Below are positions 30,955-64,000 of a stretch of DNA of 64,000 nucleotides, in pieces (position 1 is the stretch's first letter; each line of letters opens with the position of its first letter). Under the pieces are notes generated by a model. It ran no database searches, was not told the DNA's origin, and worked only from the letters and a program-made list of their open reading frames with translations. Origin of the DNA: Bugula neritina (lineage: Eukaryota > Animalia > Bryozoa); assembly GCA_964035545.1 (NCBI GenBank), contig OZ037770.1:7048729-7112728 (forward strand). The letters are read 5' to 3'. The position numbers were made by a program, and so were the translations under genes.

Positions 30955-33512
30955 CACAGTTAGTTTAAGGTCACACTTTTCATTTTCTGGCTCTTTGCCA
31001 GGTGCTTTATGTTCTATATGAACAATGTTCCACTGATAGCTCGAACAGGTTGAATGTCACAGGAACAAAAAAAATATGAAAAGATAAAGAAACTTATGTT
31101 CTCCAATATACTTTTTTATTTTTTTCAAAAACCAATTCATGTTTAAGTTATAGCTTGTTGAAAAACATAGTCCCCCTTCCACATTCTTTTCAATTTATAC
31201 GCTCCTGACTTGTTATTGCGTCTCAATATGCCTTGTATTTGAGTGCTAGTTAGTCTTGCTTCACTAACTTTGCCTATACTTCACAAGTGCCAGTGCTGCT
31301 GGCTCAAAAGCTAAATGTTATAAACTGTCAGCTAAAACCCAATCTTGTATTCCTAGGTTGGTTAGCCTAAACAAAACAATAGTCAAATCATGATTTCATG
31401 TTTTAAAAATTTACTCTATTCTAACCTGCTGCCTAGCTATAGTTCTATTTTTGATGTATAATTACAAAATTTGTGATACATTTTTTTGGCAACCATGTGA
31501 TTTATAAAATGCAGTAATGGTACTTATAATATTATATTATTATCATTATAATATATTATATAGTATTATGTGTGTTTTTATTATACTGCATAATATCTAT
31601 TTTATTATTGTTGTTGTGCAAACAAGTGCAATTAACCTAGTTTTCAAAATGTACCTCTAAATTATCAGAATATCAGTTTAGATATGTTCATGCTTTGTAA
31701 GGTAAACCTAAAAAAAGAGGCTGTATTCCCAAAGTAAAGGGTGTTGAACTATGAACTATATTAGATTAGCCACTCTGCTACCAAGTGCATCAGTATAATA
31801 TTATATGAATAGCTCTGATGCTTTGTCTCCGGTGGCTGGCTGCGATATGATAACTTGGCCAACTTCCAAGAGTTTAAAATTGGCGCAATTATTCAAGAGG
31901 TTACATACTGCACAGAGCTAGCAGTGATAGTAACCTTGCTATTGACAGTACTTATTACAACTGCCAGCATATAAGCTGCATTGTAGAATGCCGTTGGGGT
32001 AGGCTAGTAAAACCAAATTCTGCTCTCTAATATACCTTAGACACAATGCAGCAACACAATTTTTAGTTTCAAATTACATTTGCCACCCTTACATGAGCTG
32101 TGGGCTTCATAAAGATTCATATGATTAGAGATTTATGCTATAGGCCCTATCTGTGCTAGTGTAGGATGAAAATAACACACCATTGTCAAAGTTAACTTCA
32201 AGTATGTTGTTTTCCAGAAACTCAGTAATGTCCATTTATCTCTCGCATACAAATACTTATGTAATAGCATACAGTTTAAGTTTTATTTTAGAGCACATCT
32301 GCAAACTCTACAATAAGAGCTTGCTTTACCAGTCTATTTCAGATCTGTTTTTGTAGCTAGCATTACGCAAGCTACTTATTTTTTAAACTTTTGGGTTATT
32401 TGTTCAAAACCATTAGCTTTGCTAGTAACCTGAGACTATTGCAACAGTTGACTGCTATCAGCATCAATTGACAGCCTGATAATTATAACCCATTTGCGCG
32501 CGAAATATTCATGTAATGATAGTTACTCATATAGTGCGCGTTTGTAATATCGATGACTGCGTGGTCCAGAGGTTAGAGGCGTCAGCGAGGAGTTGGTTGG
32601 TCATGGTTCAACCCTGTTTTGTTGCAATTTTTTTTATCAACTTATGCAAATCCTACGCATGTATAATAAATATGGCTATAATTGTAAAGTTTTTTTTCAA
32701 CTTTTGTTCAACAGTAAGACAACATACATGCATAATAATTAGATACTGAACACTGGACTAAACCTTAAATTGATCTTATAGAATACAATGTACTTAAAAT
32801 AATCATATGCGAATTAAAGAAACTGAAAGTACACCTGCTGACAAGACTGCAAAGTGAAGTGATTTAGCTGAAATTAACTCTGCCAAACAAACAAAGAATT
32901 ATGTTGTGCTGAGGCATTTTCAATATATTATTGTAACATAGTGAGATGATTCAGCTAAGCGCTAATGTAAAACAGGGAACATTATATTGGCAGAAATCCA
33001 ATAGATTGCCAATTTGTGCGAGAGGGTACTATATGTTATTGTGATAGCGCAGAGCGGCAAACGTACTAGGAATGCTATAATTAGTCACAGGAGCGTAGCT
33101 AGAACCACCATATGAAGAATTTAGAAAATTGCAGTGAAACTTGCAAAATGGTGTATGTTTTTACCAAATTGTGAAGAGCATAAACAGAATTTCAAAAAAC
33201 AAAGAAAGTATATTAGAGAAAACATATCAAGGAATGTCAAGTTTAACTTTTAGACTTTATAAAATGAATCCCCTGTGCTACAGCAGTGGAACATGGAGGG
33301 TGTAAAATTTTACTTATTATGCAACAACTTTCTCAGAAAATTTTTTATTGAAAAATTAAAAAAGTATATGAAAGAGGAATGCAAGAGCTATCTTTTCATG
33401 TAAAATTTGTTAATGTGAGACAAAAACTGTTCGAGCTATCCCCTGGAAACCGTTTATATATAACATAAAGCAGTGCTTGAATCTGGAAAGTAATGACCTT
33501 AAACTAACTGTG
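30955..33512. mobile_element. Non-autonomous TIR DNA transposon, copy 2 (2558 bp), nested in the LINE ORF
   Basis: Same TIR CACAGTTAGTTTAAGGTCA...TGACCTTAAACTAACTGTG. TSD TC at 30953-30954 and 33513-33514. Excision restores the LINE codons GGT ATT CAC CCT GAG GTT ATC AAA (GIHPEVIK). Same orientation as copy 1. Confidence 0.95.
32555..32624 (+). other. tRNA-derived segment (A/B-box-like) inside transposon copy 2
   Basis: Homologue of 6701-6770: GACTGCGTGGTCCAGAGGTTAGAGGCG...GGTTCAACCC. Confidence 0.5.
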
Positions 33513-35089
33513 TCAGGGTGAATACCATCAGAGCCAGGTGATTTCCCTTCACTTAGCATCGAAGTTGCTTTGATGATCTCTTCAATATTTGGGCAATCGT
33601 CCATCCAGTCTTGAATGGGAGCTTGTCTCAGGTTCTCAATGATGTTGTCATCAATATCTGCAGTCTCAGTTAGTAGCTTGCTGAAATGCTCTGTCCATCT
33701 CGCTAGAAGATCTTGTTTTTCTGTCAGGAGTGTGGAGCTGTCACTGGCCAGGAGCTGGTCAGGATGACTCACTCTTGGACCCCAAACAGTCTTCGTGCTT
33801 TGGTAAAAGCCTTTTGTGTCGTTAGTGTCAGCAAACCGTTGCAGTTCAGCAGCTTTTGCCAACCACCAGTCGTTGTTGAGCTCCCTTCATCTTCCTGTGA
33901 GTTTTCTGCCAGCCATTCTATGCTTTGACTTGTTCGAGCGAGTCTTCCTGGTTAACATGTCTGCTCTGGTCTTGTTTCTCTTCTGGATGAGCCCTTGAAG
34001 TTCATTATTATTCTCGTCAAACCAGTCCTCATGCTTCCTGCTGACAGTGCCGAGGTGCACTTTTGACTCTGCATAAACTATCTCTTTGAATGCTCTCCAC
34101 TTAATCTCTACGCCCTCTGGAGCAGAGTTCAGTTTCCCAGCAAGGAACTTTTCCAGTTCTTGTCTTACTTCCTCATTCTTAAGTCGAGAAACGTCCAGCT
34201 TCTGGCAAGGTGTTCTCCCTTTCTTCATTTTTCTCCTCACTCTGAGCTTAGCTTTTGACCTGATCATGATGTGGTCAGTACTGCAATTCGCCCCTCTCAT
34301 CGCCCTTGTGTCCAGAATGTCTGGTAGATCACGTTGTCGTGTGATAACAAAGTCGATGAGATGCCAGTTCTTGCTTCTCGGGTGCATCCAAAAAAACTTG
34401 TGAGCTGGTTTATGCTTGAAGAAGGTGTTGGTAATGCACAGTTGATGTTTACTACAGACTGAGATCAGAAGTTCACGATTGGAGTTCAGGTTTCCGCAGC
34501 CATACTTGCCTACTACACCGGGCCAGGTTGAGTGATCTTGTCCAACCCTAACATTGAAGTCTCCCATGAGTAAGATCTTATCAGCTGCTGGGACTGATCT
34601 TAGAGCCTGATTCAGTTGGTCATAGAATCTGTTGATGTTTTCTTGGCTGTTTGTCACCGTGGGAGCATAGACAGCTATCACAGTGCACCATCGCTCATCA
34701 CACAGAAGAACCCTGAGTGACATCAGTCTGTCGCTTATAGCCTTTGGCTCTTCGATTAGTCTCGAAACAAGTTCGTTCCTGATAGCAAGAGCCACGCCTA
34801 ACTCACTGAGCTCAGATGCAGTTTTGCCACTCCAATAAATGGTGTAGCCTGACTCTTCACGAATGTTACCGGTATCTTTGAATCTGATTTCACTCAGTGC
34901 TGCAATGTCGATGCCATACTTCTGTAGTTCAGATGGAATGATTGCACATCTTCTCTCTGGTTTTGCTGTGTTCTCCCGGTCTAGCATTGTTCGTATGTTC
35001 CATGATGCAAGGTTGAGTTTAGAAATTTGGACCTTTTTATCCTGGGCGACGTTCTGACAGTATGAGTTCATGTTCAGTTTTCTTTTCAT
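33513..35089 (-). pseudogene. LINE ORF 5' part: apurinic-like (APE) endonuclease domain and linker
   Basis: Motifs ASWNIRT, IAALSE, VIAVYAPT, LMGDFN, WHLIDFVI and CSTDH in ORF 33887-35089. Frameshift near 33890. Continues NDWWLAKAAELQ...KSPGSDGIHP up to the transposon insertion at 33512. Confidence 0.9.
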
Positions 35090-35147
35090 GATTCAATCGG
35101 ATTATGCTGACAAGAAGTTTAAGGATACTTAGGGTTTTGACAGTTGC

Positions 35148-36420
35148 TTAAGCACTTTTCAGCACATTTAGGCACATTTAGGCACTTTTAGCACATTTTA
35201 GCACATTTCAGCACTTTTTAGAACTTTTGGGCACTTTTAGCACATTTAAGCACTTTTTAGCACCTTTAGGCATTTTTAACACAGTTAAGCACATTTGGGA
35301 ACTTTTTAGCACATTTGGGCACTTTTAGCACTCTCGAGCACTTTTGTGCACATTTGGGCACTTTTAGCACATTTAAGCACTTTTTAGCACATTAGGTCAC
35401 TTTTAGCACATTTTGCCACTTTTTAGCACAGTCATTTAGGCACTTTTTAGCACCTTTGGGCACTTTTAGGCACATTTAAACACTTTTTTAGCACATTTAG
35501 GCACTTTTTAGTACATTTAGGCCATTTTTAGCACATTTAGGCACTTTTAGCACATTTAGGCTTATTTGGGCACTTTTTAGCCCATTTGGGCACTTTTAGC
35601 ACTTTTGAGCTTTTTTTAGCTTATTTGGGCACTTTTAGCACATTTAAGCACTTTTTAGCCTAGTTAGGCACTTTTCAGCACATTTAGGCACTTTTAGCAC
35701 ATTTAAGCACAGTTTAGCACATTCAAGCACTTTTTAGCCTATTTGGGCACTTTTAGCACAGTTAAGCACATTTGGGCACATTTGGGCTCTTTTAGCACAT
35801 TTTGCCACTTTTAAGCACATTTAGGCACTTTTTAGTACATTTAGGCACTTTTCAGCACATTTAGGCACTTTTAGCACATTTAAGCACATTTTAGCACATT
35901 TAAGCACATTTTAGCACATTCAAGCACTTTTTAGCCTATTTGGGCACTTTTAGCACATTTAGGCACTTTTGGCTCATTTAAGCACATTTGGGTACTTTTT
36001 AGCCCATTTGGGCACTTTTAGCACTTTTGAGCACTTTTCAGCACATTTGGGCACTTTTTAGCCTAGTTAGGCACTTTTTAGCACATTTAGGCACTTTTAG
36101 CACATTTAGGCACTTTTTATCCATTTGGGCATTCTTTGGCACATTTAAGCACTTTTTAGGACATTTGGGCACTTTTAGCACTTTTGAGCTTTTTTTAGCT
36201 TATTTGGGCACTTTTAGCACATTTAAGCACTTTTTAGCCTAGTTAGGCACTTTTCAGCACATTTGGGCACTTTTAGCACATTTAAGCACAGTTTAGCACA
36301 TTCAAGCACTTTTTAGCCTATTTGGGCACTTTTAGCACAGTTAAGCACATTTGGGCACATTTGGGCTCTTTTAGCACATTTTGCCACTTTTAAGCACATT
36401 TAGGCACTTTTTAGTACATT
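35148..36420. repeat. Satellite B, ~10-bp-period array (GCACATTTAG / GCACTTTTTA; ~20-21-bp composite), left block
   Basis: GCAC recurs every 9-11 bp with T3-T5 tracts. Diagnostic variants such as cacagtcatttagg and attaggtcac also occur beyond 48862. Confidence 0.96.
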
Positions 36421-37702
36421 CACAGCATAGTTAAGGTCATCCCCAGCATAAATTCATCTCATAATCTAGTCTCAGTTCCTTTATGCTATTGCTCTGTGGG
36501 CGGCATGCGTATTGCCTACTTGTCATACTTTAGCATGAGGTTGAACAATTACCAGCAAACCATTGCGCTAGTTAGGGCTGCGCTTGTTTCCATTACAACC
36601 ATCACAACAATCTATTGAGCAAGTATGCAAGTGGCAAGCCTCAGCATTACCTTATTATTATTACGGAAGGTCGTTGGTTCATTGTATATGCAATATACTT
36701 TATGCACAATGGAAGATGATTTTCATACAGTTACTTTTTCAACCAGCAATCTACAACTATTTCACATTATGAAAGCAAGCTATATAGATACATCAATGCT
36801 AATTCATTATTTATCCATACAGCTAGTTTAATGAAGTTATTATCAACAGCTATTGAAATGACAATGCAGCCATCATCTAAGTAACTTTTATTGCTGCTCT
36901 ACTAATAGATATTTTAAAAGATAAGAATTTCTCAAAGCATAATGTATCCTGGACTGTACTAAAATATATCTGTTTAATGCCATTGACAATCTCAGAGCCA
37001 AAATTACCTTCATCAACAAAATCTTTCTCTAGTTGCACCTACTACAAGCTAAAAGTGACTTCTCGGTGTTGAATATTACTATCAGTTACATAATTTACGA
37101 GTCCACCCAATTGCTTAGCATAGTAAAGAGACTGGCATAGGTCAGATAGTCATGTGTGTGCGAGATTTTGTTGGTAGCTGTAAAGGGCAGATATGCAGTA
37201 TTTTGAGTGGCTGCTTTGAGTTTAGATGGTTTGGGTAACGGATTTGATTGCTGCAAGTTTCCCACAAAGCTAGTACTATTGCGGTCTCATTGATACTAGT
37301 ATAATAAGCAGTAATCAGCACTCATTGAAGGGAGTTGGAACTATATAAAAAAGGTTAGAACGGTAGCCTGTGCTTCAAATAGTTTATTTGCTTTCTGATG
37401 CATACAGTCTAAACTCTAAAAGGTTCTATTAAGCTTACATGGCTTCGAGCTGAATGTCCAAAAATTGGCCATGAGCTATATATCTTGTTGCTCAACACTG
37501 GAAAATTTATGAGTTTGCAGCCAGTGAACAATCAGGCTACTTTGTACTTAGTTTGTTATCATATAAGCTAGGCTTTTATATACTAACCCAGAGTTAAAAT
37601 TATCAAATATTTTATGTTTTTTAAACTTACCATCTAATAGGAAATGCTAGTTAAGCTAGACATCCGAGTTTGGCTGATGCTATGGTTGCCCGAGTGAAAC
37701 AG

Positions 37703-37750
37703 CTGGGGGAATCCCCCCTAGTGGGAATTCCCCCAGGTTGGGAACCACTG
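37703..37750. repeat. 34-bp GC-rich palindrome followed by a hAT/Charlie-type terminal motif (probable MITE remnant)
   Basis: CTGGGGGAATCCCCCCT|AGTGGGAATTCCCCCAG (37703-37736, 2 mismatches), then GGTTGGGAACCACTG (37736-37750), the reverse complement of the hAT-Charlie-like end CAGTGGTTCCCAACC. No partner end was found. Confidence 0.5.
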
Positions 37751-38096
37751 GTCCAGTTAGACTAACTGACATCATGCTTTCCTGAGTGAAACACCCAAGA
37801 TGAAAAGTTTTAATCTTAGTTAGGCAAGAATTGAGATTTTGAAAAAAAGCCTCCTTAAAATTATTACCATGTTGTTTAAGAACTTATACCATAGGTATAG
37901 AGAAAAGTATGTAAGTTTAATGCAGGTTTACTGATAATTATATGAACAGAGGCAGCGATCAACATTACATTTATGATGTCATTGCTAGTTATTCGCCAGA
38001 GTTGCTGCTATAGTTGGAAGAAGTAAAAACTCCAGCATGCTAACTTATACTGCTGTAAATGAAGAACTCAACAGATTCCATTGTGGCATGCATATT

Positions 38097-40573
38097 TCAT
38101 TTTCTTGGGTCTACAGAAACCTTCAATGGTTCATTCACCCAATGGCCTTCATAGCTGTCAGAAAATGTGAACAGAATAACTAGGAGCTATATACTGCTGG
38201 TTATATACCACACATTATGTAACATAATTTAGGCAGTATTCATGGGGCTAAAACATCTATAGGCTGTATTTATTGTAGGACTTATGACATTCAGGCAGTC
38301 TATTACTATATTAAATTATCTTGCCTGCTAAAACTTAGCACTGAATGGTAAAAGTAATAGGCCGAAGCTTCTAAGTTATGGTTTTTTTACTTTTAATAGG
38401 AGGCTCAACCAAATTTTTTAATTACCAACTATGTTGCACCAGCTATATCTAAAATCAGCTAGGCAAGGCAATTACAAATCCTGTTCACAGCTTCAAGCCA
38501 TTTGCTAATCAGTAACCAACCATTTTAGCTACTTACTGCCATACTGGCCTCAAATTGTTGGTTACACATTTGGTGCATCTTTTCATTGCTTCTGCTTTAT
38601 CAAAAAAATATGGAGCTTTCACCAAAGTGAAAAACCTATTGTTAAACAAAATACTTTCTGGCTGGATATGTATGTATTTGCTGTTAGATTTTGATTGTAC
38701 TTAACTGAGTACTATGAACAAACAGTATCTACACCCGCAGCAATAGTTGGTTAAATATAGAAATGATTCATAATTTCAGTTATCCAGATTCTTAACACAT
38801 GTAAGTTATGTGATTGGGTAGCTTCTATAAAGAAATTGGAGCCTAAATTTAAATAAGGAGCCAATTTTAGCAAAATCTGGTTATATAGAGCCTTGCCATT
38901 GCATTCATTCATTAGAGAACATTCAGTCATGGCAAAAGGCAGCACTTACAATAATCAGTGTGGTTTTCTAACCAACATCTTTTTTGTACATTTCAAATCT
39001 GGGACTGACGTAGAAAGATTTCAGCAAGATTACAACATACTAAACAAATTATCAATAAAGGATTACAATCGAAACAGAAAGCAAACGAGAAGTTACTTAA
39101 TGAAAAATGCCAGTTATTTCAATAAGGATGGAGAGGCAAAAAAGAGGTTTATGTCCTACTTTACACTAGTCAACTTTAAAAAACTTTCACCTGCGGCTAG
39201 ATCACGGCATAGTCTTATGGATTGCTTTGAGTGTTCTATCAAACACAAAGCTGAGTGGCAGCTCAAAATTGGGAATGTGGACATTGCAAAGCCTGCTACA
39301 TCTGAAACCGCAGTCAGGACTCTGAAAGCTGTTCTTGAAAAGACTCCAGAACAAATAACAGGAAAGCTGGTCAAAGAATTTGTAACGAATGTCATTAAAC
39401 CAGCAGAAAAAATTATAAATGAAACAACACATTCTTGCAAACTATTGAAGCCTAAAAGCAACGTCAAGAGGAAATCTATTGCTGCCCAAGACGTTCCAAA
39501 AAAAGTTCGGAGACAAATTATTAAAGCTGCCAATGAAAGCATCTCAAACCAAATTATTAACAATGACTTTTTGGCTCTATATTCTACTAAACAGTCTCAT
39601 TCAGAGTGGGATTTACAGAGGAAGTGCCAATTTGGTGAATTTAGAACCAACAGAAAAAAATCTCATATAGGAAGTTTTAGGAACTACACATTTGATTTAG
39701 AAGTGGTTGAAGCTACATTATCAGTTGGCAACACAACAAATTGGACACAGCTTAGCAAATCTGCTAATTTGAAAAACAAGCATGGTGAAGTTCCAAAAAA
39801 TGCAGGCCAGGTAAGAAAAAGAGGTAGCTAACGTTAATTATAATTGGATTTGTAATAATGATTTATTGAGCTATATAATATTCTGTAAAAGAAATAAACA
39901 TGATAATTTTGAACAAGTACGTTTGCTAATAGTCAAATATAATTTCTAAAATAAACAGTTGTTCACATCAGGTTATGAAAGAATTGGTGAAAAGAAATAT
40001 GAATCGAACGATAGAAAACCAACCAAGAAAGCGAATTTCATGGATAAACTATAAATCTTTAGCACTTAATGTTAAGAGAAAATCATCAGCTGCACAATTG
40101 AAGTTACAAAGGAAAAAAATGATAGACACAGGAGAGGTTGATGTAGGGGAGCTGATAGTTCCGGTGGAATATCATGCACTCAAAGTGCACCCAGATGGCA
40201 CATTGGTGAGTTTGACCTGAGCAGCTCAGTGCAAATACTATGACTGTATATAATTACATACAACAATATTGTAATCCTGTTGTATTTTCAAGGTAAAGAT
40301 TAGAAAGGAAGTATCCGGAAGAAAATTCTCACTTCAGAAGATTAGAGAACATCATTTACATCAAATGATGACTATGAAACTGTTGAGAAACATTAATCCG
40401 AGCAGTATGCCGCTGACTGAGGTTCTTGATTTCCTTGATCGAAATGGTACCTTGATTCTCCTGTTGTTTTACTGATAGTCTTGTAATACCTACAGAAAAA
40501 AAATCAAATTTAGTGAGATGTATAGCAAAAATACAAAGCTGTATTACCAGTTTAATCTTGATAGAAGTATTAC
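38097..40573 (-). CDS. Candidate spliced antisense small ORF interleaved with the transposase gene (contains CxxC; function unknown)
   Basis: Minus-strand GT-AG exons 40573-40548, 40489-40451, 38635-38537 and 38154-38097 join in phase to VILLSRLNWYYKTISKTTGESRFFTLVKAPYFFDKAEAMKRCTKCVTNNLRPVWHYEGHWVNEPLKVSVDPRK*. A possible ATG exon lies at 46308-46282 (MPRQERFLL|gtaagt). No homology recognised. Confidence 0.33.
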
Positions 40574-41467
40574 CTTATAATGAGAGAAAATCATAGTACA
40601 AATATATTATAGTTGACATTATATTCTCAACCTTAATTATCAAAGTTCATTAACTTTTTGATAAATGATGGAGTGCAATAATATGTGCCTTGTGCAGACA
40701 GCACAACCTCATTGATTAGTAACTCTAACAAATTGTATACTTGAGAAAATATTCAAGCATACACTGGTTCAGCTTGTGATGGTGTTATTATAGGTATAGC
40801 AGTGGGAAGCAATGAAGATCCTAGAGAGAGGCTACGCCAGGCTACTCAAACTCGCTATATGGCACTGTGGCACGATCACTCTGATATTGCCGGTAAGTAG
40901 CATAAACTTACACACGTCTCTAAACTTTTACTTTATGCTGAATTCCAAACTAAAACTTTTTATTTATCATAAATCAAATTACTATTATTGCAGGTAAAAG
41001 TCATTATCTGTTTATGGTGTGGTTCTTGTATGATCCGTGCACATATTACACGGATGAAGAATATGTGAAGCTCAACCAAACTGTAAGTTGTGTAATGTGC
41101 ACAGTTAATGTCATTGTACAAGCTGTGCAAAAATACTATTTGTGTAACCCAAAACTTGTACAATTAATCCTTTTTTCACCAGTATTACATATACTTCCAA
41201 TGCCTGTTTCTAACTCAGGAAAAGATAACTAGCATTCAATCAAGAGTTGAGGCACCATATATCTACATACTGGCCAGATCTAGCTCATCAGTTAAAGATC
41301 AGCTGCTTTACGTTCCAACTCGATTGGAAGACATGAAGATGTTAAAGCAACCAATTACTTTGACAGATGGAAGAGACTTTTATGATGTGTTAAGGTTCTT
41401 TTCAGGGGACAACCCTGCAAGGCAGCTAGAAGCAGGACAACAGTGCGGAGGTATATTCGGACAAGAT

Positions 41468-41548
<81 letters not shown>

Positions 41549-44500
41549 CAGTAATAGCATATAATTGTGCATAATCGCTTCTACTGACATATTTTATTTT
41601 TTTTGAAAATATCATTATTTCAGGAATGTTTCCATGCATATGCGGAGTGCAGGATGAACATTTTGGGAATGAAAGTTCACATAATAAAGGTGGCAGCTTC
41701 CACAACTTAGATTCAAGAGTCCAGCACCTCAACAAAACCAAAACATGGAAATCGGGCTTTCATAGTGGAAATATTGCTGTTTTCCAAACTCTCAGGGTAT
41801 GTTGTATATGTGCAACTATATAAATAAGCTTGAAAGTAACTTTTTAGAAAGAATGTACATTTATTAATTTATTTATTGTATTTAAGACTGAAGAACTCAA
41901 AGCAGAACTCCTCAGGAGAAATGTAGCTTTCTCAACTACAGACCAACCGGCACAACTAAAGAAGCTACTAAATGTCAATCTCAAAGGTAGGCAAAGCTGA
42001 TGAACAACTAATTATTCATGTGAGCTTCTCTGGTGGAAGAATTTGGCTATAAAGGGTACATTGAATGTGTGTATGTGCAAGAGTGTAGGCTGCCTATATA
42101 AAGAGGGTAAATATCATTTGTAACTTACCAACAGGTATCAAGAGGCCTCCAGCATTACTTTGCTCAAGAATGGAAAATCCAGTGGATATTTCGCAGTATG
42201 AAATAGCACTGATGGAGCCATTACATGACTTCAAAAATGTAATTAATAGAGTTTTGAAAGAGCTTCCTCATTCTACAGAAGAAAAAGAATTAAAAGTTAT
42301 GCTATCAAATCTAATTTCTGACATAGAAGGTAAACATTATCATTTTGATATAACTGATATTGATGTAAAAGTTTTATAGAAAACAAAATGTATAAATAAA
42401 ATTTAAAATATTGTGGCATGCCAATATAGTTTATAGAAACCTAATGGATAAATTCTAAGAATTTATCTAAGAATTGATGTTAGAGCAGTTATGCAATGAC
42501 AATACAAATTTCCAAATTATATTAGTAGTTCAATGTAGAGAAAATTATAAATGCAGTTGATAATTGAATCTACACAATGCTGAAAAACCAAGATGTTAGG
42601 TAAGAGCTTCTGCCTTTATACAACTGTAACTACCACACTGCATGAGTTCTGCATTTTATTACAGCACAAAACCGGGAAATGAAAGGTACAGAGAGTAGAA
42701 TTAACCTAGTAAAAGTGGCTGTAATGCTAAAACAATTTGAGTTTTCTCCCGATGGCCGGACAATGTATACAATGCTCCTTTCGCTAATTGAGCTACAAAA
42801 ATTGGCATACGCTCTTGATACCCAAAGGACACAGAAGAACATTTTAAGGGCATACAATCATAGTTTTTTATTTGCCATGAGGTGTATACAGTTATTTAAA
42901 GAACCAAAGACATGCAGCAAACGGGCAATGTTTGGCATGCCCTTTCATTGTCTAACGGTTCATTTACCAGAGACCCTGAGGATAGTTTCAGGCCGGTCCC
43001 TGGTAGCAGAAAGTGCTGAAAGGCATTTCCACAAGCTAAGGTACAAGCTGTCATTTGACGGCATATATTTAGGATACTAATATAGTTTGTGAAAAATAAT
43101 TGAATAGTTCAACTTCAATGAAAATAAAAAATGTTTAGTCTCCCAACAACTAATACAACTTCCTAAATTAATTTATTTTGGAGAAATTGCTTTGCGATGC
43201 TCCAGCAGAGAAGCAAATGATATTATTGCCAAGGCAATGTTCAGGGCAGCTGTGGAGAAAAGAGCTGACAGCACATCAGAGAGCAGCATTGCAGTGCAAG
43301 AGAAACAGATAAACCAGAAAATAAGCAGTTCATCAATTACAAAATCTTGTTGTGGATTATATTTGGGACAAAATACTGTTATCTCAACCAAGTAAGTTTT
43401 AATTATAGCTTGGGGTAGGCCTACTTAACATTTCATATGTAAATAACTATATAGCTACAGCAATAATATTGTGACCTCACCAGCAGTTTGTAATGATAAA
43501 GCATATTTATTGTAAGAATGCTTTGATCTCTAGATTTCTAACAACACATAGAACTGCAGCTCTGCACCACTTCAAACGAATAGCAGACTACCTAGAATTG
43601 GGAGAGGGTACGTGGTACACAGTGCGAGAAGGAGCTATAGAGTTCCACGATGGCGATAGCTCTCCCAGTAGCCATGATGCAGGACCTGCATTGGCTCATT
43701 TTCGGTAAATAATATTATTCAAATAGTCAACTGCTTTTATTTTAAGAGACTGATACCTTTTAAAATTTTCAAAGATGTCAGATAAATATATCATTAATAT
43801 TGTTTTTCTGCTAGCTGTTTCTATTTATAAATGCAGCTCCCACGATATGAAAGACATTAACAGCATGTTGGATAATAGCTGGGAATTCTGTGTACGAAAT
43901 AAAAGTTCCTTAAAAATCCCACTTCTCATAGACGAGCAAAGATGTAGTGCAAAAATATTAGGTGGGTAATATTTTAAACATAAGCTTCAATATTCTTTTG
44001 CCTTCTAATATTATTTGCAATACTCTCATAAGGCAGCAATGATGAAAGTTTTGAAAGATCACTCATATTTTGCTAATATAGTTTTTTTATAAACTATTTA
44101 AATATCAAGGTCAGTTTTAAAGTCTATCATCATTAATATTTTTTAAAATTACATCTAGAACAACCAGCAACAAGCCAGATCAAACCTAGTATTGGCATCA
44201 TAATGAAAGAGTTAGAAGACAACAGAAACCCTGCGCACACTGCATCTATTCTGCAACAGGAAACACTCCAACTGGTTAAGGAAGATAGTCTGTCAGCTTC
44301 TTTTGTGTGTGCTGTCCCCTTACTAACAAAAAGTAAGTACTGCAAAAGTAAATGTAGCTGGACTTTGTCATTATAATTATTTAGTTGCTGCAAGTCTAAA
44401 AATTATTAAAATCAATATCTCAAAAAGCTTAACTCAGTATTACGTTTCATAGTTAGATCACAACTATTCAACAACATTTAATACCACTCCGACTGCCATG

Positions 44501-45372
44501 CAAATTGATCTTTCAAATGCATGATATAGACGTAGACTAATTAATGTAAATGAGCAAGTATTGACTTGATCAAAAACTTACAAATTAGCCCCAATAGTCA
44601 TGTCACACTATAATATAAGTATTGGACAGGACTGAGTTTTGCACAACTTGATTTTGTTCATGTATACTGAGAATTGGCATAGCTGAATGTTGACTTGATC
44701 TGAATTTCTGTGACTATATCCAATTTATATTTATTAAAAAATCTTACCTTTAGATTTGACTCCCAAAAGCATGTTAACACCCAGTACAAGCAACAAAATG
44801 CCGGTTAAAAGCTGTAACAAGTCAGTTTCAGGTGAGTCAAGAAAGTCAACAAAGAATCTCACAACTGATCAACTTTAAATCAACAAAATTATTTGTTGCT
44901 AATAAATAATAAATAATTTATGCATGATGCTACATCCTTCGTGGACTCGGCGGTATTTTAGCCAAAAATATTAATTGTTCAACTACAGTATATTAGACTG
45001 ATCGAACTGTTCAACTGCTATTGTGAGTTGTTGCAGATGAGCCTAAACAATTGCTAAAGACAAATGTATATAATTTGTATTTTAGATACTATACGAAGTA
45101 TATGGCCATATAGCACAAGTATATTGGAAGACTTTATCAAAGCTAAAAGAGATTGCAAAGACAAAACGATACTTGCTCACAAAATCAAGTGGAGAGAAGT
45201 GTGCAAGAAAATTAGACCATTTTTAACGCAATTATTAGAGAAACTGATAGAAAAGAACAAAGCTGAAACAATGGAAAAGCTTAAAACAAAAGGACTATTT
45301 GCTCTGGAAGCGGACCCACAAAATTCTTATAAGATAAAATGCATAAATTACTGGTTAAAGCAAATTAGCTAA
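38929..45372 (+). CDS. Multi-exon DDE transposase (~1190 aa) with RAG1-core/Transib/CMC-type signature and SAP-like insert
   Basis: Manually spliced, phase-consistent exons: 38929-39810, 39972-40205, 40293-40446, 40794-40892, 40994-41082, 41219-41450, 41624-41796, 41887-41986, 42135-42329, 42665-43040, 43182-43391 (acceptor reads GG), 43534-43704, 43837-43961, 44159-44332, 44754-44831, 45086-45372. Total 3579 nt with no internal stop. Motifs: HSLMDCFEC, ALWHDHS (D 40874), RFFSGDNPARQLEAGQQCGGMFPCIC (D 41408), EELKAELLRRNV...QLKKLL, EPLHDFKN, FHCLTVHLPE...AESAERHF (E 43018). The last three exons are less certain. Confidence 0.8.
41471..41546. repeat. (TA)38 microsatellite in transposase intron 6
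   Basis: Perfect TA run between the donor at 41451 and the acceptor at 41623. Confidence 0.97.
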
Positions 45373-48300
45373 AAATAATTTAGAACAGCAATTTATGTTG
45401 CTGATTGCAAGTGCGGAGCTGTTTTTAATAAGTTTGACCATCTCCATTATCTCTCATCATTTCCATGCATAGAAATTTAATTTTTTTTAACGAAGTGTTA
45501 TAGAATAACTATAAGTTATTACTTAATAGCTACTGCAGTTATCATAGACAAACTGATGGAGCTCAAATTTAAATTACGTCATGTTAAGTTTAACTCTATA
45601 TTGGGATTTATTATTAAAGTTTTAGGGTGCGCCCGTAAAATTTTATTTATTTTTTTCACATTATAATTGATATTCATATTGTTATAATTTTATAAATATA
45701 AGGATAAAGTTATGACGATGAATGTAAAACAATTGCATATAAAATAATGTGGTGCATACTGGACATCATGATTATGATTATCTAAATAATATAAATATGC
45801 ATCATTGTAACTGCATGTGTAATCATAATGTGTACAACTACAAGTGCAAAATGAAAATAGTGGGCCGAATAATTTATTGATGAGTCAATAGTATTACTAT
45901 TAGTGTTAACTATTAGTATTATTACTTATTGGTTATTAGAATTACTATTAATGTTAGACTTTGAACTAGAAGTTAGTAGTAGTTACTGTTAGTGTTACTG
46001 TTAAAGTCTCTAATTAATATTATTACTGTATTTAAATTTTAGCAGTTGAACGCAACAAAACTTTGAACCACAAAAACAAAAAATTAAATTAAAATTTGAA
46101 AAGCACAAAATACGATAAAACTTGCATACCAGCAAACATAAGTCTTAGTCTTAGTGAGTGAGTCTTTCCTCCGGTGAGCCAGTTTGATTTTCACATTGTT
46201 TAAAAGATAAGGGTTTTTTTTTAATATTTTTCACAACTAAAATAATTTGATTTTCATAGTGAATGAATATATATTACTTACCAGTAAAAACCGTTCTTGT
46301 CTTGGCATATTATGTATGCTAGATATCATTAATCCAGGTCAAGTCTAGCAAAGTCTCATAGCGCCGTACAATTGCAGTAGCTGTACTAGATTTCCTGCAT
46401 CGTAGTAAACCGCAGCTAGAAAGTTGATCACGCAGCACAAGCATGCACAGTTTTAAAGGGGGGGTTGTTGGATTTAACATTTTCAAAAGATAAGGGGATC
46501 TTGCAGTATAAGAAAATTATCTATCAATTCATAATACATCTAAAAACTTAATATGTCTTTAATAAAATAAAATATTCTCTCACCAAGATAGCAAAGAAAA
46601 ATTGTTATACATAAATTTTAATCAAATTCCCCCACCCCTGATATAATACTATATTTAGGCTACCCACTTGAAGGCTGCATGCTGGACAACCAGTCACCTT
46701 CGTGATCTTGATTCAAAATAGTATTATAAAAATAAACTAATTGTGTATACTGCAAGCCGAAAGCATAAATTGCTCAAATAACTTAGAAAGCAAGCTGGCA
46801 ATAACAAATGCTACTGAATACTATTACATACTAATTGATGCAGTCAAATGAAAATATGTTAGGCTATGTTATGTTAAGGTAAAATTCAGGCCTTAGCTGC
46901 ATGCAGTAAATAGATAAATTCTAGCAGAGAACGTACTATCTCTACTTATTTCAAGTTCATATCTACAGTATCACCGCATGCAGATTAGTTTCTGCCAAGT
47001 TTCCTCAACACTGAAGGATCTCATGACTGCAGCTGAGTTAGCAATATTATGCTTGTTGACTAGTTAGAGAGTTTTTTATGACACATTATTTTCATCCTGC
47101 AAACTCTGCCACATTGAAAGGGTTTAATATGACACTGATATTCTTGATGTAAGTGCCTAATTTACTTATCAGTAACAAGTGATTTAGTTGGCCTTCAAGC
47201 TCAAATCATGAGCTCATTTCAGCTAAAAATAGCTGCACCTTGTCACTGCATATATGAATGGCTGCATGGCCACTGCCTCAGCCATCAACTTCTATTGCAA
47301 AACTGCTACGTGCAATATTTATTCATCAATCAGAAACTATACCTATTTTAAGCTACCAGAGTTTTGTTACTATATAAAGAGTTGCCTACTTATAGGTGCA
47401 AAAATAAAAAAGCCTCAATACCTAGTCTAAATTCTTTAATTTTTTAAGAGATTCTAATTTGAGAACAGGTTGATATTTTATGCTGCATCTCACTGCCTAT
47501 AATAGGTCCAATAATTATAGGAAACATATAGGGTTTAATTTCTCAATATCCTCATCACTACACGTACCTCATATACTTGGTATACTCATGAAACTGGTAA
47601 TACGATTTTTATCAAAATTTGACTATATTTTTAAAAATAAAGTTATACAATTACTATTCAATTAGTTAAGAATTTCCTCCAACAACTTTTGTAGAAGCGG
47701 AGGTTTTTTAAAACTTTAAATTAGCAATGCAATAAGCTTGGTTATAAATCTATTATTAGTATAATTTATATTACCTTACAGAACAACAAATTTGCTTTTA
47801 AATCGCGCACAAAAGCTATAAAACTTGGTGGCTACTACATCTCACTAGCATTATAAGGTGCTTAGGTTTTTAAGCTGCATAAACTATAATTGCTAAACTG
47901 TTTTGTGCTAAAAATGTATAGGATACAGAGTATACACTTGCACTCAGCTAGCTTGGGAGCTCTGCAGTAGAACAATGAAATTTTTGTCTCGCTTTGAAAT
48001 GTTTCTGATGTTGCGTTGGGACACTTTGGCTCAGAGGTGTGAAGCTGAAACTCTCAAAAAAAATAATTAGATCAGAAACTGATATTTCAAATATATTTTG
48101 TTTGATTTGTGTCTCTTATGTGTGGTTCTACAGACTTCAAAAACTGCTTCATAACTTTATACAACTAAAATCTAAAATCGGGGTATAGCTAGACTACACA
48201 TTTTACAGCCTCGCAGCTGTAGGCAGTACAGCAACTTTGCAACCACCGAGATTTACTACCCTACAATATTTAGTAACCAGTCTCGTACTATGTAACTGGT

Positions 48301-48520
48301 TTAGCACAGAGATGAACTATAACCCTTTGGTTTAGCGCGCAAACAACATGAATCATAGGTCGCGTGAGCTCCCGGTAATCATTATGATAGCTAGCAGCGC
48401 AGCGCAGCTCTACTGTGTTCAGCCAAGCATGCAGACTAAGGGGAAGCAAAATTTCTAATAAAATCAGTGTATAAATTACATGTTTACACTTATTCTATTG
48501 AAGCTATGCAGAAAATTTGA

Positions 48521-48800
48521 AAAGGTTCCAATAGACAAATATCTTATCACTCCATAACTCAGTTTTTGAAAAAATATATCAAATAGGAATTGAGTTATAT
48601 TTCGGGCACTGAGACCATGTTTTTTTGAGCAAAAATGGGTAAAATCTGGTAGTTTTTCGGGCATAAAAGTACAACAGATGAGACAAATGAAAGTTTTAAA
48701 AAAGGTTCCAATAGAGCAGCAAGAGATATACAACATAGTTTTTGAATTTTGTTTCTAGACTCAAAATTATTCGAGTTATGAGTTGGGCACTGTTTCATAT
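48521..48800. repeat. Degenerate ~180-bp subterminal direct repeat at the right end of the large transposon
   Basis: AAAGGTTCCAATAGA at 48521 and 48701; AGTTTTTGAA at 48561 and 48737; GAGTTAT..GGGCACTG at 48592 and 48773. Confidence 0.7.
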
Positions 48801-48862
48801 ATAATTATAATGGAGCAATGAAATTACTGATTCAGTAGAAGGATGACCTTAATCAAGCTGTG

Positions 48863-51800
48863 TTTAGGCATTTTTTAGCACATTTAGGCACTTTTAGCAC
48901 ATTTAAGCTTATTTGGGCACTTTTTAGCCCATTTGGGCACTTTTAGCACTTTTGAGCTTTTTTTAGCTTATTTGGGCACTTTTAGCACATTTAGGCACTT
49001 TTTAGCCTAGTTAGGCACTTTTCAGCACATTTAGGCACTTTTAGCACATTTAAGCACATTTTAGCACATTTTAGCACATTCAAGCACTTTTTAGCCTATT
49101 TGGGCACTTTAAGCACAGTTAAGCACATTTGGGCACATTTGGGCACTTTTTGGCACATTTAAGCACTTTTTAGCACATTTGGGCTCTTTTAGCACATTTT
49201 ACCACTTTTTAGCACATTTAGGCACTTTTTAGCACATTTGGGCACTTTTAGCACATTTAAGCACTTTTTAGCACATTTAGGCACTTGTTAGCACATTTAG
49301 GCACTTTTCAGCACCTTTACGCACTTTTAACACAGTTATGCACATTTATGCATTTTTTAGCACATTTGGGCACTTTTTGGCACATTTAGACACTTTTCAG
49401 CCTATTTGGGCACTTTTGGCTCTTTTGAGCACTTTTCAGCACATTTGGGCACTTTTAGCACATTTAGGCACTTTTTAGCACATTTATGCAGTTTTTAGTA
49501 CATTTAGGCACTTTTTAGCACATTTAGGCACTATTAGCACATTTAAGCACATTTCGGCACTTTTTGGCACATTTAAGCACTTTTTAGCACATTAGGTCAC
49601 TTTTACCACATTTTGCCACTTTTTAGCACAGTCATTTAGGCACTTTTTAGCACCTTTGGGCACTTTTAGGCACATTTAAACACTTTTTTAGCACATTTAG
49701 GCACTTTTTAGTACATTTAGGCATTTTTTAGCACATTTAGGCACTTTTAGCACATTTAGGCTTATTTGGGCACTTTTTAGCCCATTTGGGCACTTTTAGC
49801 ACATTTTACCACTTTTTAGCACATTTAGGCACTTTTTAGCACATTTGGGCACTTTTAGCACATTTAAGCACTTTTTAGCACATTTAGGCACTTTTTAGCA
49901 CATTTAGGCACTTTTCAGCACCTTTACGCACTTTTAACACAGTTATGCACATTTATGCATTTTTTAGCACATTTGGGCACTTTTTGGCACATTTAGACAC
50001 TTTTCAGCCTATTTGGGCACTTTTGGCTCTTTTGAGCACTTTTCAGCACATTTGGGCACTTTTAGCACATTTAGGCACTTTTTAGCACATTTATGCAGTT
50101 TTTAGTACATTTAGGCACTTTTTAGCACATTTAGGCACTATTAGCACATTTAAGCACATTTCGGCACTTTTTGGCACATTTAAGCACTTTTTAGCACATT
50201 AGGTCACTTTTACCACATTTTGCCACTTTTCAGCACATTTGGGCACTTTTAGCACATTTAGGCACTTTTTAGCACATTTATGCAGTTTTTAGTACATTTA
50301 GGCACTTTTTAGCACATTGAGGCACTATTAGCACATTTAAGCACATTTGGGCACTTTTTGGCACATTTAAGCACTTTTTAGCACATTTGGGCACTTTTTA
50401 GCCATTTGGGCGCTTTAGGCACAGTTAAGCACATTTGGGCACATTTAACCACATTTGGGCATTTTTTGGCACATTTAAGCACTTTTTAGCACATTTGGGC
50501 TCTTTTAGCACATTTTGCCACTTTTTAGCACATTTAGGCACATTTTAGCACATTCAAGCACTTTTTAGCCTATTTGGGCACTTTTAGCACATTTACGCAC
50601 TTTTGGCTCATTTAAGCACATTTGGGCACTTTTTAACCCAGTTGGGCACTTTTAGCACTTTTGAGCACTTTTCAGCACATTTGGGCACTTTTAGCACATT
50701 TAAGCACTTTTTAGCCTAGTTAAGCACTTTTTAGCACATTTAGGCAATTTTAGCACATTTAGGCACTTTTTATCCATTTGGGCGTTTTTTGGCACATTTA
50801 AGCACTTTTTAGCACATTTGGTCACTTTTAGCACATTTGAGCACTTTTTAGCACATTTGAGCAGTTTTTAGTACATTTGGGCCCTTTTTAGCACATTTAG
50901 GCATTTTTTAGCACATTTAGGCACTTTTAGCACATTTAAGCACATTTGGGCACTTGTAGCACATTTAAGCGCATTTGGGCACTTTTCAGCACATTTCGGC
51001 ACTTTTTGGCACATTTAAGCACTTTTTAAGACATTTGGTCACTTTTAGCACATTTGAGCTTTTTTTAGCACATTTAAGCAGTTTTTAGTACATTTAGGCA
51101 CTTTTTAGCACATTTAGGCACTATTAAGCACATTTAAGCACTTTTAGCACATTTAAGCACATTTGGGCACTTTTTAGCCCATTTGGGCACTTTTAGCACT
51201 TTTGAGCACTTTTCAGCACATTTGGGCACTTTTAGCACATTTAAGCACTTTTTAGCCTAGTTAGGCACTTTTTAGCACATTTAGGGACTATTAGCACATT
51301 TAAGCACATTTGGGCACTTTTTAGCACATTTAGGCACTATTTAGCACATTTAGGCATTTTCTAGCCTATTTGCGCACTTTTCGCACTTTTGAGCACTTTT
51401 CAGTACATTTGGGCACTTTTCAGCCCATTTAGGCACATTTCAGCACGTTTGGGCTTTTTTAGCACATTTAAGCACATTTTGCCACTTTTTAGCACATTTA
51501 GGCACTTTTTAGCACATTTAGGCACTTTTTAGCCCATTTGGGCACTTTTAGCACTTTTGAGCACTTTTCAGCACATTTGGGCACTTTTAGCACATTTAAG
51601 GACTTTTTAGCACATTTAGGCACTATTAGCACATTTAAGCACATTTGGGCACTTTTTAGCACATTGAGGCACTATGAACACATTTAAGCACATTTGGGCA
51701 CTTTTTAGCACATTTAGGCACTTTTTTAGCCCATTTGTAGCACTATTAAGACATTTAAGCACATTTGGGCACTTTTTAGCACATTTAGGCACTTTTTAGC

Positions 51801-54800
51801 CCATTTGTGGCACTTTTAGCACATTTGAGCACTTTTCAGCACATTCGGGCACTTTTAGCACATTTAAGCACTTTTTAGCCTGTTTATGCACTTTTCAGCC
51901 CATTTAGGCACTTTTCAGCACGTTTGGGCTTTTTTAGCATATTTAAGCACATTTTGCCACTTTTTAGCACATTTAGGCACTTTTTAGCACCTTTGGGCAC
52001 TTTTAGGCACATTTAAACATTTTAGAACATTTAGGCACTTTTTAGTACATTTAGGCATTTTTTAGCACATTTAGGCACTTTTAGCACATTTAAGCATATT
52101 GGCACTTGTAGCACATTTAAGCACATTTGGGCACTTTTCAGCACGTTTCGGCACTTTTTGGCACATTTAAGCACTTTTTAACACATTTGGTCACTTTTAG
52201 CACATTTGAGCCTTTTTTAGCACATTTAAGCAGGTTTTAGTACATTTAGGCACTTTTAGCACATTTAGGCACTATTAGCACATTTAGCACTTTTAGCACA
52301 TTTAAGCATATTTGGGCACTTTTAGCCCATTTGGGCACTTGTAGCACTTTTGAGCACTTTTCAGCACATTTGGGCACTTTTAGCACATTTAAGCACTTTT
52401 TAGCCTAGTTAGGCACTTTTTAGCACATTTGGGGGACTATTAGCACATTTAAGCACATTTGGGCACTTTTTAGCACATTCAGGCACTATTTAGGACATTT
52501 AAGCATTTTCTAGCCTATTTGGGCACTGATCGCACTTTTGAGCACTTTTCAGTACATTTGGGCACTTTTAGCACATTTAAGCCCTTTTTAGCACGTTTAT
52601 GCAGTTTTTAGTACATTAGGCACTTTTTTTCGCACATTTAGGCACTATTAGCACATTTAAGCACATTTGGGCACTTTTTGCACATTTAAGCACTTTTTAA
52701 CACATTTATGCAGTTTTTCGTACATTTAGGCACTTTTTAGCACATTTAGGCACTATTAGCACATTTAGGCACATCTTGGCACTTTTTGGCCCATTTACGC
52801 ACATTTTAGCACATTTGGTCACTTTTAGCACATTGTGCCACTTTTTAGCACATTTAGGCTTTTTTAGCACCTTTGGCACTTTTAGGCACATTTAAACAAT
52901 TTTCAGCACATTAAGGCACTTTTTAGCCCATTTGGGCACTTTTTAGCACTTTTAGGCACTTTTTAGCCCATTTGGGCACTTTTAGCACTTTTGAGCACTC
53001 TTACGCACATTTGGGCACTTTTAGCACATTTGGGCACTTTTAGCACTTTTGAGCACTTTTCAACACATTTGGGCACTTTTAGCACATTTAAGCACTTTTT
53101 AGCCTAGTTAGGCACTTTTTAGCACATTTAGGCACTATTAGCACATTTAAGCGCATTTGGGCACTTTTTAGCACATTTAGGCACTATTTAGCACATTTAG
53201 GCATTTTCTAGCCTATTTGGGCACTTTTCGCACTTTTGAGCACTTTTCAGCACATTCGGGCACTTTTAGCACATTTAAGCACATTTTGCCACTTTTTAGC
53301 ACATTTAGGCACTTTTTAGCACATTTAGGCACTTTTTAGCCCATTTGGGCACTTTTAGCACTTTTGAGCACTTTTTAGCACATTTGGGCACTTTTAGCAC
53401 ATTTAAGCACTTTTTAGCCTAGTTAGGGACTTTTTAGCACATTTAGCACTTGTAGCACATTTAAGCACATTTGGGCACTTTTCAGCACATTTCGGCACTT
53501 TTTGGCACATTTAAGCACTTTTTAAGACATTTGGTCACTTTTAGCACATTTGAGCTTTTTTTAGCACATTTAAGCAGTTTTTAGTACATTTAGGCACTTT
53601 TTAGCACATTTAGGCACTATTTAGCACATTTAAGCACTTTAGCACATTTAAGCACATTGGGCACTTTTTAGCCCATTTGGGCACTTTTAGCACTTTTGAG
53701 CACTTTTCAGCACATTTGGGCACTTTTAGCACATTTAAGCACTTTTTAGCCTAGTTAGGGACTTTTTAGCACATTTAGGGACTATTAACACATTTAAGCA
53801 CATTTGGCACTTTTTAGCACATTTAGGCACTATTTAGCACATTTAGGCATTTTCTAGCCTATTTGGGCACTTTTCGCACTTTTGAGCACTTTTCAGCCCA
53901 TTTAGGCACTTTTCAGCACGTTTGGGCTTTTTTTAGCACATTTAAGCACATTTTGCCACTTTTTAGCACATTTAGGCACTTTTTAGCACATTTAGGCACT
54001 TTTTAGCCCATTTGGGCACTTTTAGCACTTTTGAGCACTTTTCAGCACATTTGGGCACTTTTAGCACATTTAGGCACTTTTTAGCACATTTAGGCACTAT
54101 TAGCACATTTAAGCACATTTGGGCACTTTTTAGCACATTTAGGCATTTTTTAGCCTATTTGGGCACTTTTCGCACTTTTGAGCACTTTTCAGCACATTTG
54201 GGCACTTTTAGCACATTTGAGCACTTTTTGCACATTTAAGCAGTTTTTAGTACATTTAGGCACTTTTTAGCACATTTAGGCACTATTAACACATTTATGC
54301 ACATTTGGGCACTTTTTAGCACATTTAGGCACTTTTTAGCCCATTTGTGGACCTTTTAGCACATTTAAGCACTTTTTAGCCTGTTTATGCACTTTTCAGC
54401 ACATTTTGCCACTTTTTAGCACATTCAAACACTTTTCAGCACATTTAGGCACTTTTAGCACATTTAAGCACATTTTAGCACATTCAAGCACTTTTTAGCT
54501 CATTTGGGCACTTTTAGCACATTTAAGCACATTTTAGCACATTCAAGCACTTTTTAGCACATTTGGGCACTTTTAGGCACATTTAAACACTTTTAGCACA
54601 TTTAAGCACTTTTTAAAACATTTAGGCACTTTTTAGCACATTTAGGCACTTTTAGCACATTTAAGCACATTTTAGCACATTCAAGCACTTTTTAGCACAT
54701 TTAAGCAGTTTTTAGCACATTTAGGCACTTTTTAGCACCTTTGGGCAATTTTAGGCACATTTAAGCATTTTTTAGCACATTTAGGCACTTTTTAGTACAT

Positions 54801-63800: not shown

Positions 63801-64000
63801 TTTTTAGCACAGTTAAGCACATTTGGGCACTTTTTAGCACATTTCGACATTTTTTGGCACATTTAAGCACTTTTTAGCACATTTGGGCACTTTTAGCGCA
63901 TTTGAGCACTTTTTAGCACATTTAAACACTTTTCAGCACATTTAGGCACTTTTAGCACATTTAAGCACATTTTAGCACATTCAAGCACTTTTTAGCACAT
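48863..64000. repeat. Satellite B main array with higher-order duplications, runs off the window end
   Basis: Same GCAC(A/T)TTT.. unit. Repeated blocks at offsets of ~607 (49314/49921), 1375 (54012/55387), 6289 (55387/61676) and 3243 bp (60131/63374, 60471/63714). Confidence 0.97.

Follow-up and report, generated by a model that had tools for sequence, protein, structure and literature searches.

What kind of mobile element is a 12.4-kb segment that starts with CACAG, ends with CTGTG, carries a gene split into many exons and is bounded by a direct repeat of 2 bp? This question is raised by a 64,000-nucleotide stretch of the genome of the bryozoan Bugula neritina (GenBank:OZ037770.1, positions 7,048,729 to 7,112,728, assembly GCA_964035545.1), hereafter the window, in which the segment occupies bp 36421–48862. 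A sequence-only reading of the window had likened the gene product to RAG1 and regarded the short duplication as an oddity. Our analysis indicates that the segment is very probably an intact and autonomous DNA transposon that moves by cut and paste, is present in multiple copies and belongs to the CMCT clade (CACTA/EnSpm, Mirage, Chapaev and Transib). It fits within this known supergroup and is no new kind of element.

Ends, target duplication and genomic copies

The outermost 22 nt of the left end (bp 36421–36442, plus strand) and of the right end (bp 48841–48862, minus strand) pair as terminal inverted repeats: 19 of the 22 positions match, and each repeat starts with CACAG. Identical termini were kept by all 20 other copies fetched from the genome. 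Tandem Repeats Finder revealed that the edges of the element coincide with breaks in a satellite, the blocks of 20-bp period ending at bp 36420 and restarting at bp 48863. The flanks read ...ACATT and TTTAGGC on the left and right, respectively, whereas the equivalent satellite sequence is ACA-TTT-RGGC in 334 of 337 units. Since five T residues are found across the two flanks where the satellite unit normally has three, TT (bp 36419–36420 and bp 48863–48864) was duplicated at insertion as the target site duplication (TSD).

The other copies, which were fetched together with their flanks, had a perfect 2-bp TSD in 19 of 20 cases and never one of 3 bp, and the duplicated dinucleotides varied (TT, AC, TA, TG, GA, CA, GG, AA and TC). 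With the window included, the TSD is 2 bp in 20 of 21 pairs. The remaining copy (L025, G000:C8:6644314-6649845) has TT on one side and TA on the other, the simplest reading being a point mutation after insertion. Thus, the inverted ends and the TT duplication proposed in the sequence-only reading are borne out by the end alignment, the satellite breaks and the other copies.

When 400 nt of each end were used as queries, at least 40 matches were obtained for each end in the 216-Mb genome. Most copies were 5.3–5.4 kb long and had just the two ends in common with the window element, about 1.4 kb on the 5′ side and about 1.7 kb on the 3′ side; they are therefore non-autonomous derivatives. On the plus strand of the window, the shared 5′ subterminal region corresponds to bp 36421–37861 (72–89% nucleotide identity to the copies L026, L040, L033 and L044), which is presumed to be a cis-acting end plus promoter and 5′ untranslated region, and comparison with the non-autonomous copies placed the shared 3′ region at bp 47154–48862. 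No open reading frame (ORF) of at least 70 codons with an obvious meaning was found inside the one non-autonomous copy inspected. A search of the element for subterminal repeat arrays revealed none. Two occurrences of a short segment, including an exact 16-mer, were also noticed close to the 3′ end (bp 48520–48570 and bp 48700–48746), spaced by about 180 nt; they may reflect a repeated subterminal binding site or no more than a local duplication.

A single copy nearly identical to the window element (99%) was located on contig C4. It is interrupted by a 3.5-kb insertion and has lost about 50 bp of exon 10, and is therefore defective, so that the window copy is the sole intact one found of its subfamily. 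In addition, a sibling autonomous family with CACAGGA ends, an AT/AT TSD and about 70% protein identity was found on contig C1 (G000:C1:13964138-13975150, L045/L046) and at four further places. At least five sibling copies had equal score and 70% identity over exon 10, and the sibling may therefore be the more recently active lineage. The ends, the TSD and the many copies rule out a domesticated single-copy gene at bp 36421–48862.

A split transposase gene and its relatives

The longest single ORF within the element is no more than 324 codons. Translated comparison with the sibling element on contig C1 revealed 15–16 collinear conserved blocks on the plus strand, bordered by canonical AG and GT sites of compatible phase. 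Competing acceptors of exons 6 and 8 were settled by the consensus of full-length homologues. In the resulting model, 15 GT–AG exons, each open in the predicted phase, total 3468 nt or exactly 1156 codons, starting with ATG at bp 38929 and followed by TAA directly after bp 45369.

Sibling blocks, homologues and open phase support exon 1 (bp 38929–39810; 294 codons), which encodes the N-terminal region with an H-x-L-x2-C-x2-C motif, exon 2 (bp 39972–40205) and exon 5 (bp 40994–41082). Exon 3 (bp 40293–40446), placed by sibling blocks and homologue consensus, has the least certain border of all at its donor. Exon 4 (bp 40800–40892), recognised from homologues, carries a WHDHS motif with the first putative catalytic Asp (codon 40874–40876), the equivalent of which lies in the first RNase H-like strand of a homologue model described below. 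Sibling blocks and homologues also placed exon 6 (bp 41219–41450), which has a GDxPARQ motif with the second putative catalytic Asp (codon 41408–41410), and exon 9 (bp 42135–42329), which has RPPALL and EPLHD motifs. Between exons 6 and 7, an (AT)n microsatellite of about 80 nt (bp 41466–41546) occupies part of intron 6 and swamps inverted-repeat searches on the element. Exon 7 (bp 41624–41796) encodes a C-x-C motif (Cys codons 41635 and 41641), both Cys being invariant in 11 full-length homologues, and exon 8 (bp 41887–41986) encodes a SAP-like helix-extended-helix segment. Exon 10 (bp 42665–43040) contains H-x4-H (codons 42946 and 42961) and E-x2-E (codons 43009 and 43018), the second Glu of the latter being presumed catalytic. 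Towards the C terminus, exon 12 (bp 43534–43704) encodes a conserved domain shared with sibling and homologues; exon 11 (bp 43206–43391), exon 13 (bp 43837–43961) and exon 15 with the TAA stop (bp 45086–45372) are backed by sibling blocks and open phase; and exon 14 (bp 44159–44332), the acceptor of which is uncertain, is conserved with the sibling family only.

Much of this had been anticipated. The sequence-only reading had stated that the gene is not visible as a single ORF, had placed D, D, C/C, H/H and E/E at the codons given above, and had counted 99 residues from Asp to Asp and 18 from the second Asp to the first Cys. All of these were found again, the two Asp and the Cys pair lying within WHD, SGD and CIC and the spacings being reproduced by exon arithmetic. 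Its spliced frame without stops also stood, although its count of 16 exons and about 1190 residues gives way to 15 coding exons and 1156 residues, a minor difference.

The window protein was searched exon by exon, and continuity across exons was checked by arithmetic. With exon 10 (144 codons) as query, a search of 1.84 billion representatives yielded 426 proteins at E ≤ 1e-3; a word-indexed protein search gave just 8 relatives. Full-length homologues of 905–1356 residues were found in Argopecten irradians, Mytilus species and Branchiostoma lanceolatum and as intronless ORFs on metagenomic contigs, all with an uncharacterised annotation, and they are collinear with window exons 1, 2, 4–10 and 12. 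Among 11 full-length homologues there is no variation in W-x-D, G-D-x-P-A-R-Q, C-x-C, E-P-L-H-D, H-x4-H or E-x2-E, and H-x4-H is nearly invariant across 51 sequences.

A Pfam scan of ten window exon pieces, of first 8 and then 11 full-length homologues, and of more distant relatives returned SAP alone. This match was in homologue P0143 (E 3.7e-6), at the position of window exon 8; exon 8 of the window itself gave no Pfam SAP match, and the family profile matched the SAP domain 1zrj weakly (E 0.21). The same profile, when searched against PDB sequences, found no transposase, with neither RAG1 nor Transib at E up to 10. The copies and homologues together indicate that the 2-bp TSD, the C-x-C, the N-terminal H-x-L-x2-C-x2-C and the SAP-like segment, all pointed out in the sequence-only reading, are real features of the family.

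Inverted ends were also sought around the homologues in two metagenomic contigs, amphioxus and scallop, and none was convincing; CACAG ends with a 2-bp TSD were therefore demonstrated here for the B. neritina genome only. At the loci in Branchiostoma lanceolatum (L053, GenBank:OV696689.1) and Argopecten irradians (L054, GenBank:CM084276.1), no inverted ends were recognised up to 10 kb to either side; these homologues may have decayed, may belong to very long elements or may have been domesticated.

Predicted fold and position within the CMCT clade

For structure prediction, residues 400–1011 of the natural intronless homologue P0052 were folded with a 51-sequence alignment. The core model had a predicted local distance difference test score (pLDDT) of 92.7 and a predicted template-modelling score of 0.93. 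In this model, Asp 41 is in the first long strand, Asp 142 directly follows a strand and Glu 430/433 open a helix, with a helical insertion of about 270 residues before the Glu pair, which is the layout of RNase H-like transposases. The 49 best Foldseek matches in the PDB were all RAG1, amphioxus RAG1-like protein (BbRAGL) or HzTransib, with a best E of 4.8e-7. VIA-align gave Z 15.2 over 378 residues for RAG1 (model 2–473 to RAG1 576–1004), 12.9 over 337 residues for HzTransib and 12.2 over 374 residues for BbRAGL, followed by the P element (Z 11.0, 285 residues), ISCth4 (Z 8.6, 215 residues) and Hermes (Z 5.5, 251 residues). As estimated from the end points of the alignment ranges, D, D and E of the family lie within a few residues of RAG1 D600, D708 and E962, and its Cys and His pairs lie near C727/C730 and H937/H942, residues whose roles in RAG1 have been described (PMC4914335). 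The sequence-only reading had staked its claim on the triad sitting on an RNase H fold, and the homologue model shows this fold together with the alignment to RAG1 576–1004.

The CMCT clade is characterised by a DDE triad on an RNase H-like fold, C(2)C after the second D and H(3-4)H before the E, by 5′-CA..TG-3′ termini and by a TSD of 2–5 bp (PMC12730594). In the present family, 1) D/D/E are invariant in 11 homologues, present in the window and placed on such a fold, 2) H-x4-H precedes the E, and 3) the termini are CACAG...CTGTG with a TSD of 2 bp. The fold, the invariant D/D/E and the Cys/His residues support the earlier assignment to the DDE transposases of the CACTA/Mirage/Chapaev-Transib-RAG supergroup. 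The same cannot be said for the TSD as an oddity, because 2 bp is within the known range of the clade. Animal CACTA elements have a 2-bp TSD (PMC4298943), and a 2026 preprint that describes duplications of 3 bp and of TA in relatives of Transib argues that TSD length is labile (10.64898/2026.08.26.747230); a 2-bp TSD on a RAG1-fold transposase is therefore no categorical surprise. Chapaev and Chapaev3 resemble the window family in having CAC...GTG termini, animal hosts and the motifs of CACTA/Mirage/Chapaev (CMC) transposases, but Chapaev, with a TSD of 3–4 bp (PMC4079192), is ruled out by the 2 bp found here.

To place the family within the clade, matches beyond the PDB have to be considered. 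To our knowledge, structures have been solved for RAG1, RAG-like proteins and Transib but for no other CMCT member. The PDB ranking therefore cannot separate RAG/Transib from CMC transposases. Among predicted structures in the ESM Atlas, the nearest were plant CACTA transposases (Transposase_21 + DUF4218; TM 0.55 by query over 404 residues, root-mean-square deviation 4.6). Plavaka, Transposase_21 from Mucoromycota and arthropods, and unnamed cnidarian, arthropod and basidiomycete clusters were also near, and no RAG1 cluster was among the ten matches listed. A language-model feature search with the core ranked a SAP-bearing cnidarian cluster first (0.96), which probably represents the same family as the window transposase, followed by Transposase_21 (0.90 and 0.89), RAG1 (0.88) and Plavaka (0.86). 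The family is thus inside the CMCT clade and about equally far from CACTA and RAG1. The resemblance to RAG1 is a deep architecture common to the whole clade and is no evidence of a special tie to RAG or Transib; the RAG1-like specificity claimed in the sequence-only reading is not upheld, predicted CACTA and Plavaka structures being at least as near.

The following points weigh against an intact CMCT transposon in the window: 1) the Pfam models of CACTA, DUF1258, Plavaka and RAG1 gave no match at E up to 5 in 11 family members, and scans of the B. neritina genome with PF13960 (DUF4218), PF02992 (Transposase_21), PF12940 (RAG1) and PF06869 (DUF1258, which co-occurs with Transposase_21 in nematode and arthropod clusters) gave none either; 2) the Cys pair, 18 and 20 residues after the second D, is spaced C-x-C in 11 of 11 homologues, unlike the C-x2-C of the CMCT member families, from which the family also differs by the SAP-like segment in its insertion domain; 3) the folded protein P0052 is a homologue about 35% identical to the window core, not the window protein itself; 4) the splice junctions are predictions from conservation and GT–AG borders; and 5) transposition activity, hairpin chemistry and zinc binding are proposed by analogy with the biology of RAG1, Transib and CACTA.

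As to whether the lineage is already known, we lean slightly towards the view that Repbase, Dfam or RepeatPeps already lists it under an EnSpm/CACTA, Mirage or comparable CMC family of animals, the window holding a member from a new species. Its homologues occur in the heavily curated genomes of Branchiostoma, Mytilus and scallop, with clusters in Cnidaria, and in the published CMCT tree EnSpm is represented by families of Branchiostoma, Crassostrea, Nematostella and Hydra, in part on very long branches. Mirage of Caenorhabditis has a 2-bp TSD and CAC-type ends; the former fits the window family, in which DUF1258 has no match. CACTA/EnSpm elements are, like the window family, long and intron-rich with abundant non-autonomous derivatives, and those of animals share its 2-bp TSD (PMC4298943). 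However, Transposase_21 is present in typical CACTA clusters of animals and fungi but not in this family, and C-x-C is invariant in place of C-x2-C. In addition, the termini start with CACAG instead of the CACTA of CACTA/EnSpm or the CCC of animal TRC-type CACTA elements (PMC4298943), and no second, TnpA-like gene was found.

It is possible, though doubtful, that the family represents a deep and as yet unnamed branch of the CMCT clade in animals, arising near the split between CMC and Transib/RAG1; the sequence-only reading had spoken of a poorly described lineage, and this may hold, since the family is covered by no Pfam model. Its traits would be the lack of any Pfam model, the invariant C-x-C, the SAP-like insert and the non-specific 2-bp TSD. 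If this were true, an intact and probably active copy would be a tractable outgroup for the origin of the RAG1 zinc-binding insertion and of hairpin chemistry.

A specific sister relationship to Transib/RAG1, with the stagger changed from 5 to 2 bp, would bear directly on how the V(D)J recombinase originated but appears unlikely. The heptamer of the recombination signal sequence begins with CACAG, so that the ends of the element equal its first five bases. Of the solved structures, RAG1 matches best, with the P element behind it, and when exon 10 alone is the query, the feature search gives 0.91 for a RAG1_ZnH2 cluster. Transib relatives with a short TSD are on record (10.64898/2026.08.26.747230), and the RAG1 spacing D600, D708, C727 (PMC4914335) is similar to D-99-D-18-C in the window. 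The likeness of the homologue model to the RAG1 core, the ProtoRAG RAG1-like protein and HzTransib (6xnx, 6cg0, 6b40 and 6pqx) covers the RNase H domain and the zinc-binding insertion and extends into the beginning of the C-terminal domain, but identity is about 13% with no match at the sequence level. As noted above, the PDB ranking is blind to CMC, of which none is solved, while predicted CACTA and Plavaka structures score equally or better and Transposase_21 stands above RAG1 in the core feature search. HzTransib scores below RAG1, and the Pfam RAG1 model has no match in family members or genome. The N-terminal 420 residues of a homologue gave a modest model (pLDDT 73) with fold matches at noise level (Z 5 or less, helix-turn-helix domains included); the weak matches to the dimerisation and DNA-binding domain of RAG1, HzTransib and BbRAGL (Z 3.9–4.8) lie within this noise, and no clear nonamer-binding or dimerisation domain is apparent in the N-terminal 400 residues of the window family. 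Furthermore, the TSD is 2 bp and not the 5 bp of RAG1/Transib. The element has no RAG2-like partner gene, by which a RAG1/RAG2-type two-gene transposon is ruled out.

It is very improbable that the gene model is spurious or the copy dead, with transposase relics left intact by chance: the model is a prediction from sequence, the sole near-identical copy is damaged and exons 3/4 and 14 have uncertain borders, but 15 in-phase open exons with a whole codon number and a stop at the end are very unlikely in a decayed copy, all family-invariant residues, the ends and the TSD are intact, and two copies 99% identical imply recent movement.

Satellite setting, proposed mechanism and implications

Satellite makes up about 43 kb of the 64-kb window (bp 69–5112, 7680–29447, 35148–36420 and 48863–64000). 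It belongs to two families of 20-bp period, with units like CAGTATGTTGCAGTATATTT and TTTAGCACATTTAGGCACTT, and the transposon lies inside the second. The two families are separated by a non-satellite region at bp 29500–35100, where the G+C content is higher (0.36–0.41). Flanks resembling the first satellite were seen in at least 9 of 20 other copies, and the transposon family either targets satellite arrays or accumulates in them. Two non-autonomous copies located 50 kb apart (L035 and L036, G000:C106:177073-182648 and 127022-132597) have identical flanks on both sides and therefore reflect a segmental or assembly duplicate, not two insertions.

We propose that the single 15-exon gene encodes a DDE transposase of about 1156 residues with an RNase H-like core, in which a helical insertion between the second Asp and the Glu would carry C-x-C ... 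H-x4-H where RAG1 has its zinc-binding Cys/His. By analogy with RAG1, Transib and CACTA, the two pairs may hold zinc, and the transposase may bind the CACAG-initiated inverted ends and the subterminal regions, with the N-terminal and SAP-like parts serving as end binders. Excision would proceed by a nick and hairpin formation on the flanking DNA, and integration with a 2-bp stagger would give rise to the 2-bp TSD. The window enzyme, or that of the sibling family, probably mobilises the 5.3–5.4-kb non-autonomous copies.

The family escapes ORF finders because its gene is split into 15 exons, and it is likewise invisible to Pfam. Its relatives in molluscs and amphioxus are annotated as uncharacterized proteins, and the family is therefore probably under-annotated in marine invertebrates. 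We know of no CACTA/Mirage/Chapaev-type transposase with a solved structure, nor of any that has been biochemically reconstituted, and RAG1 and one Transib are the sole structural windows on a very large clade. The window copy is intact and its ends are defined, the genome around it offers many non-autonomous substrates, and a homologue yields a confident RAG1-like model. It is thus a practical starting point from which to ask whether the clade as a whole inherited hairpin chemistry and the split Cys/His zinc site from its ancestor.

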